Part shown: in pieces, positions 16,850-21,409 of the stretch
Position numbering within the stretch: position 1 is the first letter of the stretch
Layout of the letters: every line of letters begins with the position of its first letter
DNA from: Blastocladiella emersonii ATCC 22665
Lineage: Eukaryota > Fungi > Blastocladiomycota
Assembly: GCA_025594325.1 (NCBI GenBank)
Contig: JANHCV010000011.1
Span: 248,001-312,000, forward strand
Reading direction: 5' to 3'
DNA length: 64,000 nt
Program-made: the position numbers and the translations under genes
Notes under the pieces: model-generated
The model's input: only the letters and a program-made list of their open reading frames with translations
Databases searched by the model: none
Told to the model about the DNA's origin: nothing

Positions 16850-18104
16850 ATGACATCAAATGAACCCCACAACTTGCCGTGCCTGCCCTTCGAGCTGATC
16901 GAGGCGATCCTTGTGACGGCCGCGCGGCTTCCCGGTCAGCTACCGCGCCACCTGCGCGAGCTTCTCCGCGTACTCCCGCGCCGCCAAGACGACACGTACA
17001 GTCCGCTTGCCCGCTTCATCCTCACCCGGCTGCCCAACTGCCGGCCCAACTGGGCTGCCTTCTACGGCCGCGTCGATGTGCTTCAAGAGTACCTCGCGTC
17101 CGGCCTCCCCTTCGACTACTTGGGGGCCGCCATGGACAAGGCGAGCTACTCTGGCCACGTTCCCGTCTTGGACTGGTTTGTTTCGTTGGGTCTCGAGCTC
17201 ACGCACTCCCGGAAAGCGGTCGAGTGGGCGTACCGCCACGACCAGTACGAGGCGCTCGCTTGGTGGTTCAAGCGCGGCGAGTACGCCGACTTTTTCGCGA
17301 CGCTTGTCGATTCCGCAAGTATGACCAACAACACCTGGTTTTTAAAATGGTGGGCCGCCGCTGGCGACGTTGCGCTTCCTTACTCGGCCGCCGCCATCGA
17401 CCACGCGAGCGCAAAGGGGCACATCGGCGTGCTTGACATCTGGCGGTCGTCTGGTCGCGAGCTCAAGTTTACGGAAATGGCGATTCACGAGGCCAGCGCG
17501 CATGGCAAGCTGTCCGTCCTCGATTGGTGGAAGGAATCGGGCCTCGAGCTCAAGTACACGAACGTTGCCATGGATTACGCGAGCGAGCACGGGCACATCC
17601 GCACGCTTGACTGGTGGCTTCACTCGGGACTCGAGATCAAGTACTCGGCCGAAGCCGTGGATTCCGCGAGCAAGCATGGACGCGTGCCGACGCTCGACTG
17701 GTGGCTCAAGTCGCAGCCCCCGACCAAGTACACGGCCGCGGCCATGGACAGCGCGAGCGCCAATGGACACGTCGACGTCCTCGAGTGGTGGCTTTCTCAC
17801 GATCTGGAACCGCTGTACAGCTGCGGCGCGATCGACTTGGCCAGCACGAATGGCCAGCACGAACGGCCACATTGACGTCCTCAACTGGTGGAACCGTGCC
17901 GGACTCGCCCTCAAGTACTCTGAGGCGGTCATCGAGGGCGCCGCGTTCGCTAGTCTGGAACCGACCTTGTACTGGTGGTCGTCGCACTCGCAGCTCGAGC
18001 TGCTGATCTCGGAGCGCGTGTGGGACTCGGAGCGCGTGTGGGACTCGAAGCGGCCGATCGTTTGTCGCTGGCTAGGTAGCCTCGGGCGAGTCACTCGACA
18101 GTAA
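16850..18104 (+). pseudogene. F-box-like N-terminus + ~10 ankyrin-like repeats (~29 aa). Reading frame broken at ~17850 by a 13-bp duplication (truncated allele, pseudogene or assembly artefact)
   Basis: 'LPCLPFELIEAIL' then repeats of consensus Y(S/T)xxA(M/I)DxASxxGHxxVLDWW. The repeats continue in another frame after the duplicated 'tggccagcacgaa'. Confidence 0.75.
17838..17863 (+). repeat. Perfect 13-bp tandem duplication (tggccagcacgaa x2) causing a frameshift
   Basis: Directly visible at 17838-17850 and 17851-17863. Confidence 0.95.
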
Positions 18105-18308
18105 AATACAGTACAGGTTAGGTCTTGTTTTGTGCCTGGGACGCGCGTTTCGCCCTGAAACCAACGCGTCGTTCATCCCGGTGGCGCCGCGTGACCGCAT
18201 TTGGACAGTGGATGGACAGCCAGGTCGGAGCGCGCAACGCCACCCTCGAACACTCTCGTCAACCCGACGCTTGCGACTCAACGAGAGCCCATGAAAAGCG
18301 AATGAACC

Positions 18309-20114
18309 ATGCATCCAGTGTCCCTGCCGCGATCGAACCGGTACCCGGAGCCGTCGACGCCGGGCAGCAAGACGGCCAGAAAGACATCTTGGCCGATCCC
18401 GCTTCCTTGCACGACGACTTCGCTCGAGGACCATCTCAGCCTGGTCGCGCGCTCGCTTGAGCCGACTCGCCGCCAGCGCGAGGTGGTCGTCGGCGCCATG
18501 GAGGTCGTCGTCGATCTCGTCATGGACGCGTTGAGCGCCAAAGTCCCCCACTTGAAGGCGACCCGGGCGGCGCGCGTCGGCTCGTTCTTCAAGGACACGG
18601 CGATCCACTTCTCGTTCGACATTGATCTTGTCTTTATGTTCGAGCGGCTCAACGTGCTGACCGACCTGAACAAGGCGCTCGACGCCATGCAGGAGACGCT
18701 GCTGCTTGCGCTTCGACCCATGAACTCGCAGCACGCGAGAATTTGGCCACTTGCCAACGGGATTTTCGCATGTATCCACGGTGTCGAACGACGGCAAAAC
18801 AGTCTCGCCGCGTCCGTGTACTGCGGCCCGCTGACTGCCGACGGGTCGATGCTCGCAACGTACACGATCAAGCTCGACCTGCTTTGCACGCGCGAGGTTG
18901 TCTCGAACCCCAAATATCGCATGGGACCTGTCGGGACTGCGCTCCAGGTCGCCGCGCTCAAACACGTCTTTGAGCATGACACGTACGATTCAACGCTCCA
19001 AGCGCATCGCCGCGTGTACCAGCCGCTCGTATCCGAGGCCGCCGTCGAAATGATCCGGCGCGCGCCGGCCGAGGCCCGCGTGCTGACGCGGCTCCTCAAG
19101 TTTTGGTCTTTTCTCGTGCTCTCGTCGCGCTTCACGGCCATGTCCAAGTCGACGGTGCTCGAGCAACTCGCGCTTTACGTCGTTGAGGAGGCGCAGAAGC
19201 GCAACGAGCCCTTGACGCTCAAGTCGCTGTTTTGGAGCGCGATCCAGAAGCTTGCCACTCTCAAATCTCTCCAGCTCGGTTCTCCCGGGCGCCAGGCCAT
19301 GAAGCAGGATTGCTACATCATTCACAAGGTATGCTTACATCTGATTCATGAGTTCGCTCCAACTGAAGCCTTCGTGATCGACTACATGTAGTGCGACGGT
19401 CTCAACAACGTGCTCGACCCAGTCAACTCGCGCCCCTTCTCGCGCGAGTACCAGCGTGAGCTGGAGCACGCAGCTCGCGCACTTGTCGACCACGTTCTCA
19501 CGTCTGGCGGCGTTGAACTGGATTGGTCGCCGTGGCTTGTTATTATTCCAGCTACTCGCCCCTTGCTTACCGCGTACCGCATGACCATCATGCTGCAGGT
19601 CCTCGACGCTTCTGACCCGAGGACCAAGTGCCCGGGCGTGTGGTCCGTGACGGATCGGTTCCGCGAGATCAACTTCCACTACCAGGTCGCTTCGTGCCTC
19701 CATCTCGCCATGCTCGCGGAGCCCGACCACGGCGAGGTGCTGACTTGCGGCTCCGCCGCGTCGATCGACATCCAAGGCGTCAAGAGTTCGCGTGGCACCG
19801 ACCCGAAACACTTTGCAACCAGTGCGGGCACCGATCCGAGCTCGCGTAGGCTGCTTGCTCATCTCCAGGCGCTGCACGACATGACGGAGCAGCTCGTCGA
19901 CTTCTCATACCTCGGCAAAGCCAACGAGGGCGTTCTCAACGACACCAACTCTGAGGCTATCTCCATGGTGCTCCCCGTGCCGCACGGCGGCGGCGAGGGC
20001 ATGTACATCGAGCTCACAGTTCGCCGCTTCGATCGCGACCCGCTCGCTAACTTCGCCGACAAGGAAGCGGGCATCATCGCCAAGGCGCTCGAGGACAACA
20101 CGTCCATCGCGTAA
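18309..20114 (+). CDS. OAS/CD-NTase-like (Pol-beta superfamily) nucleotidyltransferase with an extra ~200-aa C-terminal domain; ~580 aa. Exons 18309..19328 and 19392..20114
   Basis: 'RVGSFFKDTAIHFSFDIDLVF' (GS + DxD), third Asp in 'IKLDLL', then 'IRRAPAEARVLTRLLKFW', 'STVLEQLALYVVEE' and, after the 63-nt GTATGC..TAG intron, 'NVLDPVNS'. This is the motif order of OAS1. Confidence 0.8.
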
Positions 20115-20350: not shown

Positions 20351-21409
20351 ATGAGTTCCGCGACCAAGTCGGGGACCACCGTCAACTTCCAAGTCGGCGG
20401 CAAGCCGCCGGCCGGCGCCGCCGCCGTCGCCATGGAGTGCACCAACGGCGCCTTTGCCACGCGCCTCGGCTTCCAGACCACCAAGCCCGACAGCACGAGC
20501 AACGCGAGCGACTGGGTCTCGGGCATCTCGATGCTGTGCTCGGACAACAGCAACAAGACCATGGGCTGGCAGTCGTCGTCGCGCGCGACCAAACTTGGCG
20601 AGACGTTCCCGAACGGGATCAACTCGCTGCTCGTGAGCTCCGGGTCGGTGATTGACGGCATCGGCTACGGCAGCACGCTGGTCGGGACCACGTCGGGATC
20701 GGGGCTGTGGCGCCAGGACCTCAACGACACGCTCAAGTCGTGCTTCGTCAAGGGCTTCTCGGGCGGGACCGGCAACTGGATTTTCAACCTTGACATGTCC
20801 TTCATCTGCCCCGTCGCGACAACCTCGACTACCGCGACCGCGACGGCGTCGCGTGCTACGGGCACGGCAACTGCGACCGCGACCTCGTCCGCCACCGCGG
20901 TGCCCAACGACAAGATCGAGGAGCAGTCCAAGCCGACCGGCGTCATCATCGGCGGCGTCGCTGCGGCGCTCGTCGTCGCGATTGCCGCGTTCACCTGGTA
21001 CAAGCGGCAGAACGCCAAGGCCGCCGCCAAGTACCACCTCGACGACGACTCGTTCCCGACCACCCCGTCGCCGCCCGCACCCGCGCCGGCGCCAGCGCCC
21101 GCGCCGACCTCGACGATCACGTACCACGACGTCGGTCTCGCGTCGGGTACGCTGCCGCCCATGACGGTCGCGCCCAAGCCCATGACCATGGCTCCCCAGC
21201 AGCAGCAGCAGTCGACGATCGTGCAGGTCCCCACCGACATGGCCGGGCTGCCGGACCCCAAGGGCGGCAACTGGGGCGGCGTCGCGCAGCAGAACATGAA
21301 CGGCGCTGGGCCCGCTCCCGTCGCGGCGCCTGCTCTCCCCGTGCGTCCCGCACCCGCGACTTCCCGCCCTGCGAACGGCGACGACAACGAGCCCCTATAC
21401 CTTCCCTAG
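20351..21409 (+). CDS. Beta-prism (VMO-I/jacalin-like) domain single-pass membrane protein, paralog 1
   Basis: 'ECTNGAFATRLGFQ...VSGISMLCSD', 'SGSVIDGIGY', Thr-rich stalk, TM 'GVIIGGVAAALVVAIAAFTWY' then KRQ, Pro-rich tail ending EPLYLP. Confidence 0.65.
   Translation: MSSATKSGTTVNFQVGGKPPAGAAAVAMECTNGAFATRLGFQTTKPDSTSNASDWVSGISMLCSDNSNKTMGWQSSSRATKLGETFPNGINSLLVSSGSVIDGIGYGSTLVGTTSGSGLWRQDLNDTLKSCFVKGFSGGTGNWIFNLDMSFICPVATTSTTATATASRATGTATATATSSATAVPNDKIEEQSKPTGVIIGGVAAALVVAIAAFTWYKRQNAKAAAKYHLDDDSFPTTPSPPAPAPAPAPAPTSTITYHDVGLASGTLPPMTVAPKPMTMAPQQQQQSTIVQVPTDMAGLPDPKGGNWGGVAQQNMNGAGPAPVAAPALPVRPAPATSRPANGDDNEPLYLP

Follow-up and report, generated by a model that had tools for sequence, protein, structure and literature searches.

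A predicted OAS-type nucleotidyltransferase with a family-specific C-terminal domain in the fungus Blastocladiella emersonii

The gene, its neighbor and its relatives

The window, a 64-kb stretch of DNA, comes from Blastocladiella emersonii, a member of the Blastocladiomycota, in keeping with the first-pass annotation, which had placed it in a zoosporic fungus. It carries a two-exon gene on the plus strand that begins with an ATG at 18309, preceded by an in-frame TGA. Exon 1 (18309..19328, plus strand), taken from the open reading frame and its translation, encodes residues 1-340 and ends on a complete codon; it opens with about 34 disordered basic residues, after which come the N-lobe and the greater part of the C-lobe of an OAS-like core. 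The intron (19329..19391, plus strand) is a 63-nt, phase-0 intron of the form GTATGC...TAG that ends in an in-frame stop. Exon 2 (19392..20114, plus strand) encodes residues 341-580, which are the last ~40 residues of the core and then a C-terminal domain; its 240 codons are followed by a TAA stop at 20112-20114. Joined, the 340 and 240 residues give a spliced product of 580 amino acids that is colinear with three relatives, and the earlier estimate of ~580 residues is therefore correct.

Alignment of the window protein with its three relatives runs across the exon junction without a gap (HK/CD in the window protein versus HM/CD, HQ/CD and NR/VD, the slash marking the junction), and the DNA of all three has a phase-0 intron at the identical position, with lengths of 74, 76 and 67 nt. 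Because three full-length relatives are colinear across the junction and carry their own phase-0 intron there, we consider the 19328/19392 splice junction to be validated by homology. Among the sequencing contigs (four runs from one sample, DNA-like in character), one spans the intron in unspliced form and none contains a joint that skips it. The G+C content is 44% in the intron versus 62% in the coding sequence, and GC3 is 80% for the gene and 81% and 91% for the flanking genes. Conservation of intron position and phase in three genera indicates an old resident gene, and by this shared position the intron is older than the split between Blastocladiella, Catenaria and Allomyces. The suggestion that a canonical 63-nt intron marks a resident eukaryotic gene is supported both by this conservation and by the native base composition. 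Bacterial contamination or a recent transfer is ruled out by the conserved intron, the native GC3 and the absence of a bacterial match.

Two antisense open reading frames overlap exon 1 on the minus strand (18278-19147 and 18072-18977); they have no support as genes and we regard them as by-products of a G+C content of 62-68%. A search with Rfam found no RNA families anywhere in the 64-kb window.

The same strand carries an ankyrin-repeat gene (Pfam Ank_4, E 2e-19) whose end lies 200 bp upstream of the OAS-like gene. Catenaria has a homologous ankyrin gene 2.5 kb downstream of its own OAS-like gene, with 27-39% identity that includes the N-terminal region, and no ankyrin-repeat gene was found within 10 kb of the B. 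emersonii paralogue described below or of the Allomyces gene. We treat the linkage as a lead for a functional pair, not as proof of one. The reading frame of the ankyrin gene in the window is shifted by a 13-bp tandem duplication near 17838-17875, which is present in contigs of three runs from one sample.

The relatives were identified by an exhaustive phmmer search of the exon 1 product against 1.84 billion cluster representatives, which returned six proteins at E<=1e-3. Three of these are full-length relatives of 566-630 amino acids, all from Blastocladiomycota: a paralogue from B. emersonii ATCC 22665 itself (KAI9173152, 586 aa, 44% identity, E 4e-61), whose gene of 1835 nt is on a separate contig, ORZ38600 from Catenaria anguillulae (566 aa, E 1e-27) and KAJ3373864 from Allomyces arbusculus (630 aa, E 4e-17). 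Two more matches are apparently low-complexity noise. The sixth is from a copepod; it contains two OAS units, matches Pfam OAS1_C and is the sole non-fungal homologue from a single-sequence search. In this library no protein exceeded 50% identity to exon 1, so the product of the window gene seems to be absent from the public protein sets that were searched. A word-index search with exon 1 as the query had no match; the same search with the family profile found, besides the paralogue, only two fragmentary Allomyces macrogynus models, and a query with one copepod OAS unit added only two further copepod proteins.

All four family members are alike in length, in their C-terminal extension and in the position and phase of the intron, while pairwise identity within the family is otherwise 27-44%. 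These comparisons describe a small, fast-evolving family that is limited, as far as the searches show, to Blastocladiomycota. In a small tree of seven rows with long branches, the fungal proteins form a group separate from copepod OAS. The terminal branch of the window copy is the shortest, at 0.35 versus 0.91 for the paralogue, and this copy is 33% identical to the Catenaria protein versus 23.5% for the paralogue. From the short branch and the higher identity, the window copy looks like the less-derived of the two B. emersonii copies.

Sequence and fold of the core

Pfam searches with both exon products returned nothing at E<=1. On the window protein none of OAS1_C, NTP_transf_2 and SMODS reached E=1 and Mab-21 (PF03281) had no match, while across the six family rows OAS1_C (PF10421) had no match at E<=10 and DZF_N gave one sub-threshold match in a single row (E 0.031). 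Single-sequence phmmer against the PDB also found nothing. When a profile of the N-terminal part of the four proteins was searched against the PDB, OAS filled the first six places, with porcine OAS1 (E 2.9e-6) followed by OAS2, OASL and human OAS1; the best non-OAS nucleotidyltransferase was CdnC (E 0.79). With the full-length family profile, all six PDB sequences at E<=10 were OAS (OAS1, OAS2 and OASL), and the match to OAS1 (E 3.8e-7) had stretches in the N-lobe (16-101) and the C-lobe (196-248), that to OASL (E 0.0019) covering its residues 189-313.

Profile-profile comparison of the family with three copepod OAS by hhalign gave 95.3% probability (E 2.3e-8) over 207 columns, which reach from the helix at the N-terminus to those of the C-lobe and so include both lobes. 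Protein-language-model features, computed for exon 1 and the Catenaria orthologue, likewise ranked OAS clusters highest (score 0.96, about 200 of 256 features shared). Judged by these comparisons the core is homologous to OAS, with a similarity far beyond chance.

AlphaFold models were made for the exon 1 product (residues 1-340). The single-sequence model (pLDDT 45.6) was discarded, as Foldseek TM values were about 0.2 and DZF, OAS and Utp22 were inseparable. A second model used an alignment of eight rows (the four fungal proteins, an A. macrogynus fragment and three copepod OAS) and reached a pLDDT of 79.4 and a pTM of 0.77, with residues 1-34 below 50 and residues 35-322 mostly above 85 in pLDDT; because of its three copepod OAS rows this model is not independent of OAS and leans towards it. 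The predicted fold is two-lobed, with an alpha/beta N-lobe built on a five-stranded sheet and a helical C-lobe.

In a Foldseek search of the PDB with the alignment-based model, OAS1 with dsRNA ranked first (E 1.1e-8), OASL and the NF90/NF45 DZF chains were almost level with it, and CdnC, cGAS and GLD-2 came next. A VIA scan of 48,161 chains, which is independent of Foldseek, left this ranking unchanged, with scores of 20.3 for OAS1, 19.2 for OASL, 18.9 for OAS3, 17.9 for DZF, 17.5 for PAP, 16.5 for cGAS and 16.2 for CdnB. DZF is the nearest structural cousin of OAS, so a close score is expected. The top eight matches in AFDB Swiss-Prot were all OAS, and in the ESM Atlas OAS had TM values of 0.68-0.70 versus 0.60 for SMODS and DZF.

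For the Catenaria orthologue, the ESM Atlas model made by single-sequence ESMFold (pLDDT 0.57) was also nearest to OAS, over residues 41-368 with a TM of 0.73 normalized by the hit, followed by bacterial SMODS, DncV, DZF and PAP; the alignment to OAS runs about 40 residues beyond the equivalent of the exon junction. This model uses no alignment and provides an independent prediction, which agrees with OAS as the nearest fold. Sequence profile, profile-profile comparison, language-model features and fold all identify OAS as the nearest family. Structural placement with housekeeping nucleotidyltransferases or with NF45 and ZFR, which the first-pass annotation had named as a result that would overturn an OAS-like assignment, is contradicted by their lower ranks in fold comparisons and by the lack of a sequence match to them.

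One reading of such a core is that it belongs to a non-canonical RNA 3'-tailing enzyme of the TENT/PAP kind, which acts on cellular RNAs and is no messenger synthase. Chains of poly(A) polymerase, TENT, TUTase, CCA-adding enzyme, Utp22/Nrap, DZF and cGAS were all absent at E<=10 from both PDB profile searches, which returned six OAS entries, and neither Pfam PAP_assoc nor PAP_central matched. In the fold comparison OAS scores about 3 Z units higher than PAP, and a fast-evolving family (27-44% identity) confined to one phylum is unlike the conserved tailing enzymes. We therefore regard a tailing enzyme as quite improbable and an OAS-type enzyme as the better description of the core.

Catalytic residues

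Template-free (Pol-beta-type) nucleotidyltransferases share a signature of three acidic metal ligands together with a Ser and a Lys that set the orientation of the NTP's gamma-phosphate (PMC3467086). In human OAS1 the metal ligands are D75, D77 and D148, and their mutation abolishes 2-5A synthesis (PMC6019448). Each part of this signature has a counterpart in the window protein. The P-loop VGSFFKDT (18576..18599, plus strand; G91, S92, K95 and T97, with the G91-S92 codons at 18579-18584) stands opposite GGSSGKGT in a HMMER alignment to porcine OAS1, and its shape, GS..K.T, is the OAS form. The strand FDIDLVF (18615..18635, plus strand) provides the predicted metal-binding residues D104 and D106, corresponding to D75 and D77 of human OAS1; their codons fall within 18618-18626, they are family-invariant and the same HMMER alignment places them. 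The predicted third ligand, D190 (human OAS1 D148; codon 18876-18878), lies in the strand KLDLL (18870..18884, plus strand), is invariant in all eight alignment rows and sits in the middle of the modeled strand 185-195 at a pLDDT of about 90; its assignment comes from MAFFT and strand topology, hhalign shifting this stretch by about 6 residues. In the model the aspartates are on strands 105-111 and 185-195, both within blocks with a pLDDT of about 90.

The C-lobe helix RRAPAEARVLTRLLKFW (19056..19106, plus strand) is the counterpart of R.RPTKLKSLIRLVKHW in OAS1 by HMMER alignment to OAS1 residues 196-214. The family shows no variation at R257, L259, R261, K264 and W266, and we predict K264 to be the Lys that orients the triphosphate. 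G91, S92, K95, T97, D104 and D190 are invariant across the fungal and copepod OAS rows of the eight-row alignment; the catalytic Ser and three Asp are common to the family and copepod OAS by MAFFT and are aligned to OAS1 by HMMER.

These results reproduce most of what had been read from the letters of the sequence. The positions first given for G91-S92, D104/D106 and D190 are exact. HMMER alignment to porcine OAS1 recovers the pairing of RVGSFFKDT with KGGSSGKGT, the DxD of FDIDLVF with that of SDADLVV, and two C-lobe helix pairings (R..L.R..K.W and LE.L..Y), while MAFFT against copepod OAS recovers the third Asp in the pairing of KLDLL with EFDVL. The last of the six proposed pairings, of NVLDPVN with VILDPAD, is not supported by the family, where LDP occurs in the window copy only and the relatives have NNLT, NNLL and NNLL. 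On our own reading, rather than from the output of a tool, the counterpart of LDPADPTGN in OAS1 is more likely the family-conserved H-x-C-D-x-L-N-N, and the earlier pairing was probably offset.

The proposal of an intact catalytic triad holds in an extended form, with the Ser, three Asp and Lys all present and family-invariant. S92, D104, D106, D190 and K264 complete the five-residue signature of active template-free nucleotidyltransferases in the window protein and are kept by every one of the four family members, which are otherwise 27-44% identical. That the five residues remain invariant at this level of divergence points to selection on catalysis. This observation bears on the idea that the protein is a catalytically silent OAS/DZF pseudoenzyme, a scaffold for RNA or NTP binding in the manner of NF45/NF90 or human OASL. 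DZF proteins (PMC3467086) and human OASL (PMC6019448) are defined by the loss of catalytic residues, the opposite of what this family presents, and no DZF chain was found at E<=10 with the family profile. We consider a silent scaffold highly improbable. Instead, the full and invariant signature suggests that the protein is an active enzyme.

The C-terminal domain, proposed function and comparison with known systems

The C-terminal domain comprises ~200 residues (381-580; 19512..20111, plus strand), was delimited by the family alignment and has a net charge of -9. In that alignment it is conserved within the family alone. A profile search of the PDB gave no match at E<=10, there was no match in Pfam, NCBIfam or PADLOC, and hhalign against OAS gave a probability of 0.5%. 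In the ESM Atlas the domain showed weak PAP/OAS-like features, with structure matches at a TM of 0.35 or less, and these features may reflect the context of the N-terminal core.

The trigger of human OAS1 is bound in a dsRNA groove whose basic residues include R195, K199 and K205 (PMC6019448). In a HMMER alignment read by hand, in which the numbering is good to within one residue, R250 and the invariant R257 stand at or beside OAS1 K199 and K205/206, while V246 stands at R195 and E255 at K204/205. On this hand reading two of the three groove residues have no basic counterpart. As aligned, these residues speak neither for nor against a dsRNA trigger of the OAS1 type.

Taken together, we think it likely that the gene encodes a resident B. 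emersonii template-free nucleotidyltransferase of the OAS type, with a private C-terminal domain and a product that is probably a second messenger. The protein would consist of three parts: a disordered basic N-terminus, a two-lobed core (about residues 35-380) and the family-specific C-terminal domain of ~200 residues. The cleft between the lobes would bind two Mg2+ or Mn2+ ions and NTP, and nucleotides would be joined there without a template. By analogy with OAS and the CD-NTases, the product would most likely be a short 2'-5'-linked or cyclic oligonucleotide acting as a second messenger. Activity would probably be controlled by the C-terminal domain or by a ligand on the basic face of the C-lobe helix, and viral or other foreign nucleic acid could, speculatively, be the trigger.

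RNase L reads 2-5A through its ankyrin repeats, and we know of no RNase L outside animals. By analogy, Blastocladiomycota might keep a form of nucleotide-messenger immunity in which the OAS-like core makes a 2'-5' or cyclic oligonucleotide under the control of the C-terminal domain and the linked ankyrin protein reads it; we offer this pairing as a long shot.

The central example of an innate immunity that bacteria and animals have in common is provided by OAS, cGAS and the bacterial CD-NTases; in this picture fungi are, to our knowledge, a conspicuous gap. An intron-bearing OAS-like family, catalytically intact by sequence, in an early-diverging fungal phylum would fill this gap and would support the view that OAS arose in the opisthokont ancestor or earlier and was then lost from most fungi. 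Through this family one could also study, in a tractable enzyme, which products OAS-type synthases form and what they respond to outside animals, and the attached C-terminal domain is a candidate for a new regulatory or sensor module.

Published surveys, in which a match to Pfam OAS1_C (PF10421) is the criterion for OAS, give a different distribution. In a survey of 174 species, 15 of them fungi, amoebozoans, choanoflagellates and metazoans were the only groups with OAS-related proteins (PMC10400998). Neither Allomyces, Catenaria, Blastocladiella nor any other fungus is named in the supplementary CD-NTase files of a EukProt-wide study, where fungal names appear in the viperin files only (PMC10732462); EukProt includes at least the Allomyces macrogynus proteins. 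The B. emersonii genome paper makes no mention of an OAS-like family. The present family shows that Pfam-seeded surveys miss divergent members.

Among known systems, the bacterial CBASS CD-NTases (SMODS; CdnB, CdnC, CdnD, CdnE, CdnG and DncV) and the eSMODS raise the question of whether the same function had a separate origin, through transfer of a bacterial CBASS CD-NTase into a Blastocladiomycota ancestor in an eSMODS-like manner. Single family sequences match bacterial cyclase models only: PADLOC model PDLC00803 gives a weak match (E 7e-6) in five of the six family rows, which are all of the rows that contain the N-lobe, and NCBIfam CBASS_cyclase_a matches two rows (E 1.4e-4) without reaching any curated cutoff. 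Pfam OAS1_C does not match, and published trees nest eukaryotic OAS in bacterial clade C and document repeated transfers (PMC10732462). The PADLOC match is confined to residues 65-128, the P-loop/DxD stretch, and the C-lobe of the window protein is unmatched by CBASS models. There is no match to Pfam SMODS (PF18144), the fold score is below that of OAS, and the gene has an ancient spliceosomal intron and no effector operon. We regard a bacterial origin of this kind as improbable.

The DZF pseudotransferases (NF45/ILF2, NF90/ILF3, ZFR and SPNR) have lost catalytic residues (PMC3467086), whereas the window family keeps all five. With cGAS and the cGAS-like receptors (Mab21, PF03281) the protein would share a superfamily, the logic of a messenger synthase and activation induced by a ligand. 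It is closest to the 2'-5'-oligoadenylate synthetases OAS1/2/3 and OASL, which are composed of Pfam NTP_transf_2 and OAS1_C, although its identity is 13-16% to the vertebrate enzymes and 19-20% to copepod OAS. Like these enzymes it has a two-lobed core of equal size and equal order of strands and helices, with a GS..K.T P-loop, a DxD, a third Asp and a helix R..L.R..K.W followed by S..LE.L..Y. Unlike OAS, it goes unrecognized by Pfam OAS1_C, matches the residues of the OAS1 dsRNA groove in part only on the hand reading above, has a 50-residue insertion at about residues 135-185, between the helix after the DxD strand and a hairpin, and carries an extra acidic C-terminal domain of ~200 residues where OASL has ubiquitin-like domains.

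The OAS-like gene and its overlapping reading frames

The public protein sets that were searched seem to lack the product of the window's OAS-like gene (18309-20114), although they do include its B. emersonii paralogue (KAI9173152). Exon 1 found no protein of greater than 50% identity among representatives of ~15 billion public proteins, and its best match in that search was the paralogue, at 44% identity. Opposite exon 1, the minus strand carries two long ORFs (18072-19147; 301 and 289 aa); there is no sign that they are genes, and such frames are expected at 62-68% G+C. Downstream on the plus strand lies a 352-aa ORF (20351-21409). Its product contains a hydrophobic segment and a region rich in Thr and Ala, and a Pfam search gave no hit at the cutoff applied.

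Introns and gene models in related sequences

In addition to the phase-0 intron shared with the window gene and its paralogue, the OAS-like genes of Catenaria and Allomyces each carry a further phase-0 intron, located after residue 289 in Catenaria anguillulae (locus L002:10001-11938) and after residue 293 in Allomyces arbusculus (locus L003:10001-12030). Both fall within the variable loop that follows the LE.L..Y helix, and they may represent a second common intron that was lost from Blastocladiella.

Both OAS-like models of Allomyces macrogynus (P0007 and P0008; AMAG_00291 and AMAG_20771) are broken: one is missing the middle part of the core, and in the other the end of a class-V aminotransferase is fused to the N-terminus of the OAS-like protein. 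An aminotransferase gene directly precedes the OAS-like gene in A. arbusculus (L003:8223-12030), which indicates that the two genes adjoin in both Allomyces species and were merged by annotation. The copepod protein P0006 (Tigriopus kingsejongensis, 1074 aa) is a tandem OAS protein of two units, the first of which contains a stretch of ~100 residues repeated verbatim, probably as an artefact of the gene model or assembly.

An ankyrin-repeat gene near the OAS-like gene

Directly 5′ of the OAS-like gene on the plus strand is an ankyrin-repeat gene (16850-18104; Pfam Ank_4, E 2e-19). Its frame is shifted by a 13-bp tandem duplication (GCCAGCACGAATG / GCCAGCACGAACG) at 17838-17875 that is identical in contigs from three runs and so did not arise as an error in just one assembly, with the limit that all three runs derive from one sample and the confirmation is not independent. 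By eye, the sequence LPFELIEAIL at the N-terminus of the protein is F-box-like, without Pfam support. Portions of the repeats have 90-95% matches on several further contigs, indicating that this ankyrin-repeat family is multi-copy.

Neither the B. emersonii paralogue (locus L001) nor the Allomyces OAS-like gene (L003) has a homologue of the ankyrin-repeat gene within 10 kb. A homologue does occur in Catenaria (MCFL01000008, L002:14462-16324, plus strand; 27-39% identity over query residues 12-336), 2.5 kb downstream of the OAS-like gene and on the same strand. The proximity of ankyrin-repeat and OAS-like genes in Blastocladiella and Catenaria may reflect either conserved linkage or chance within an expanded family.
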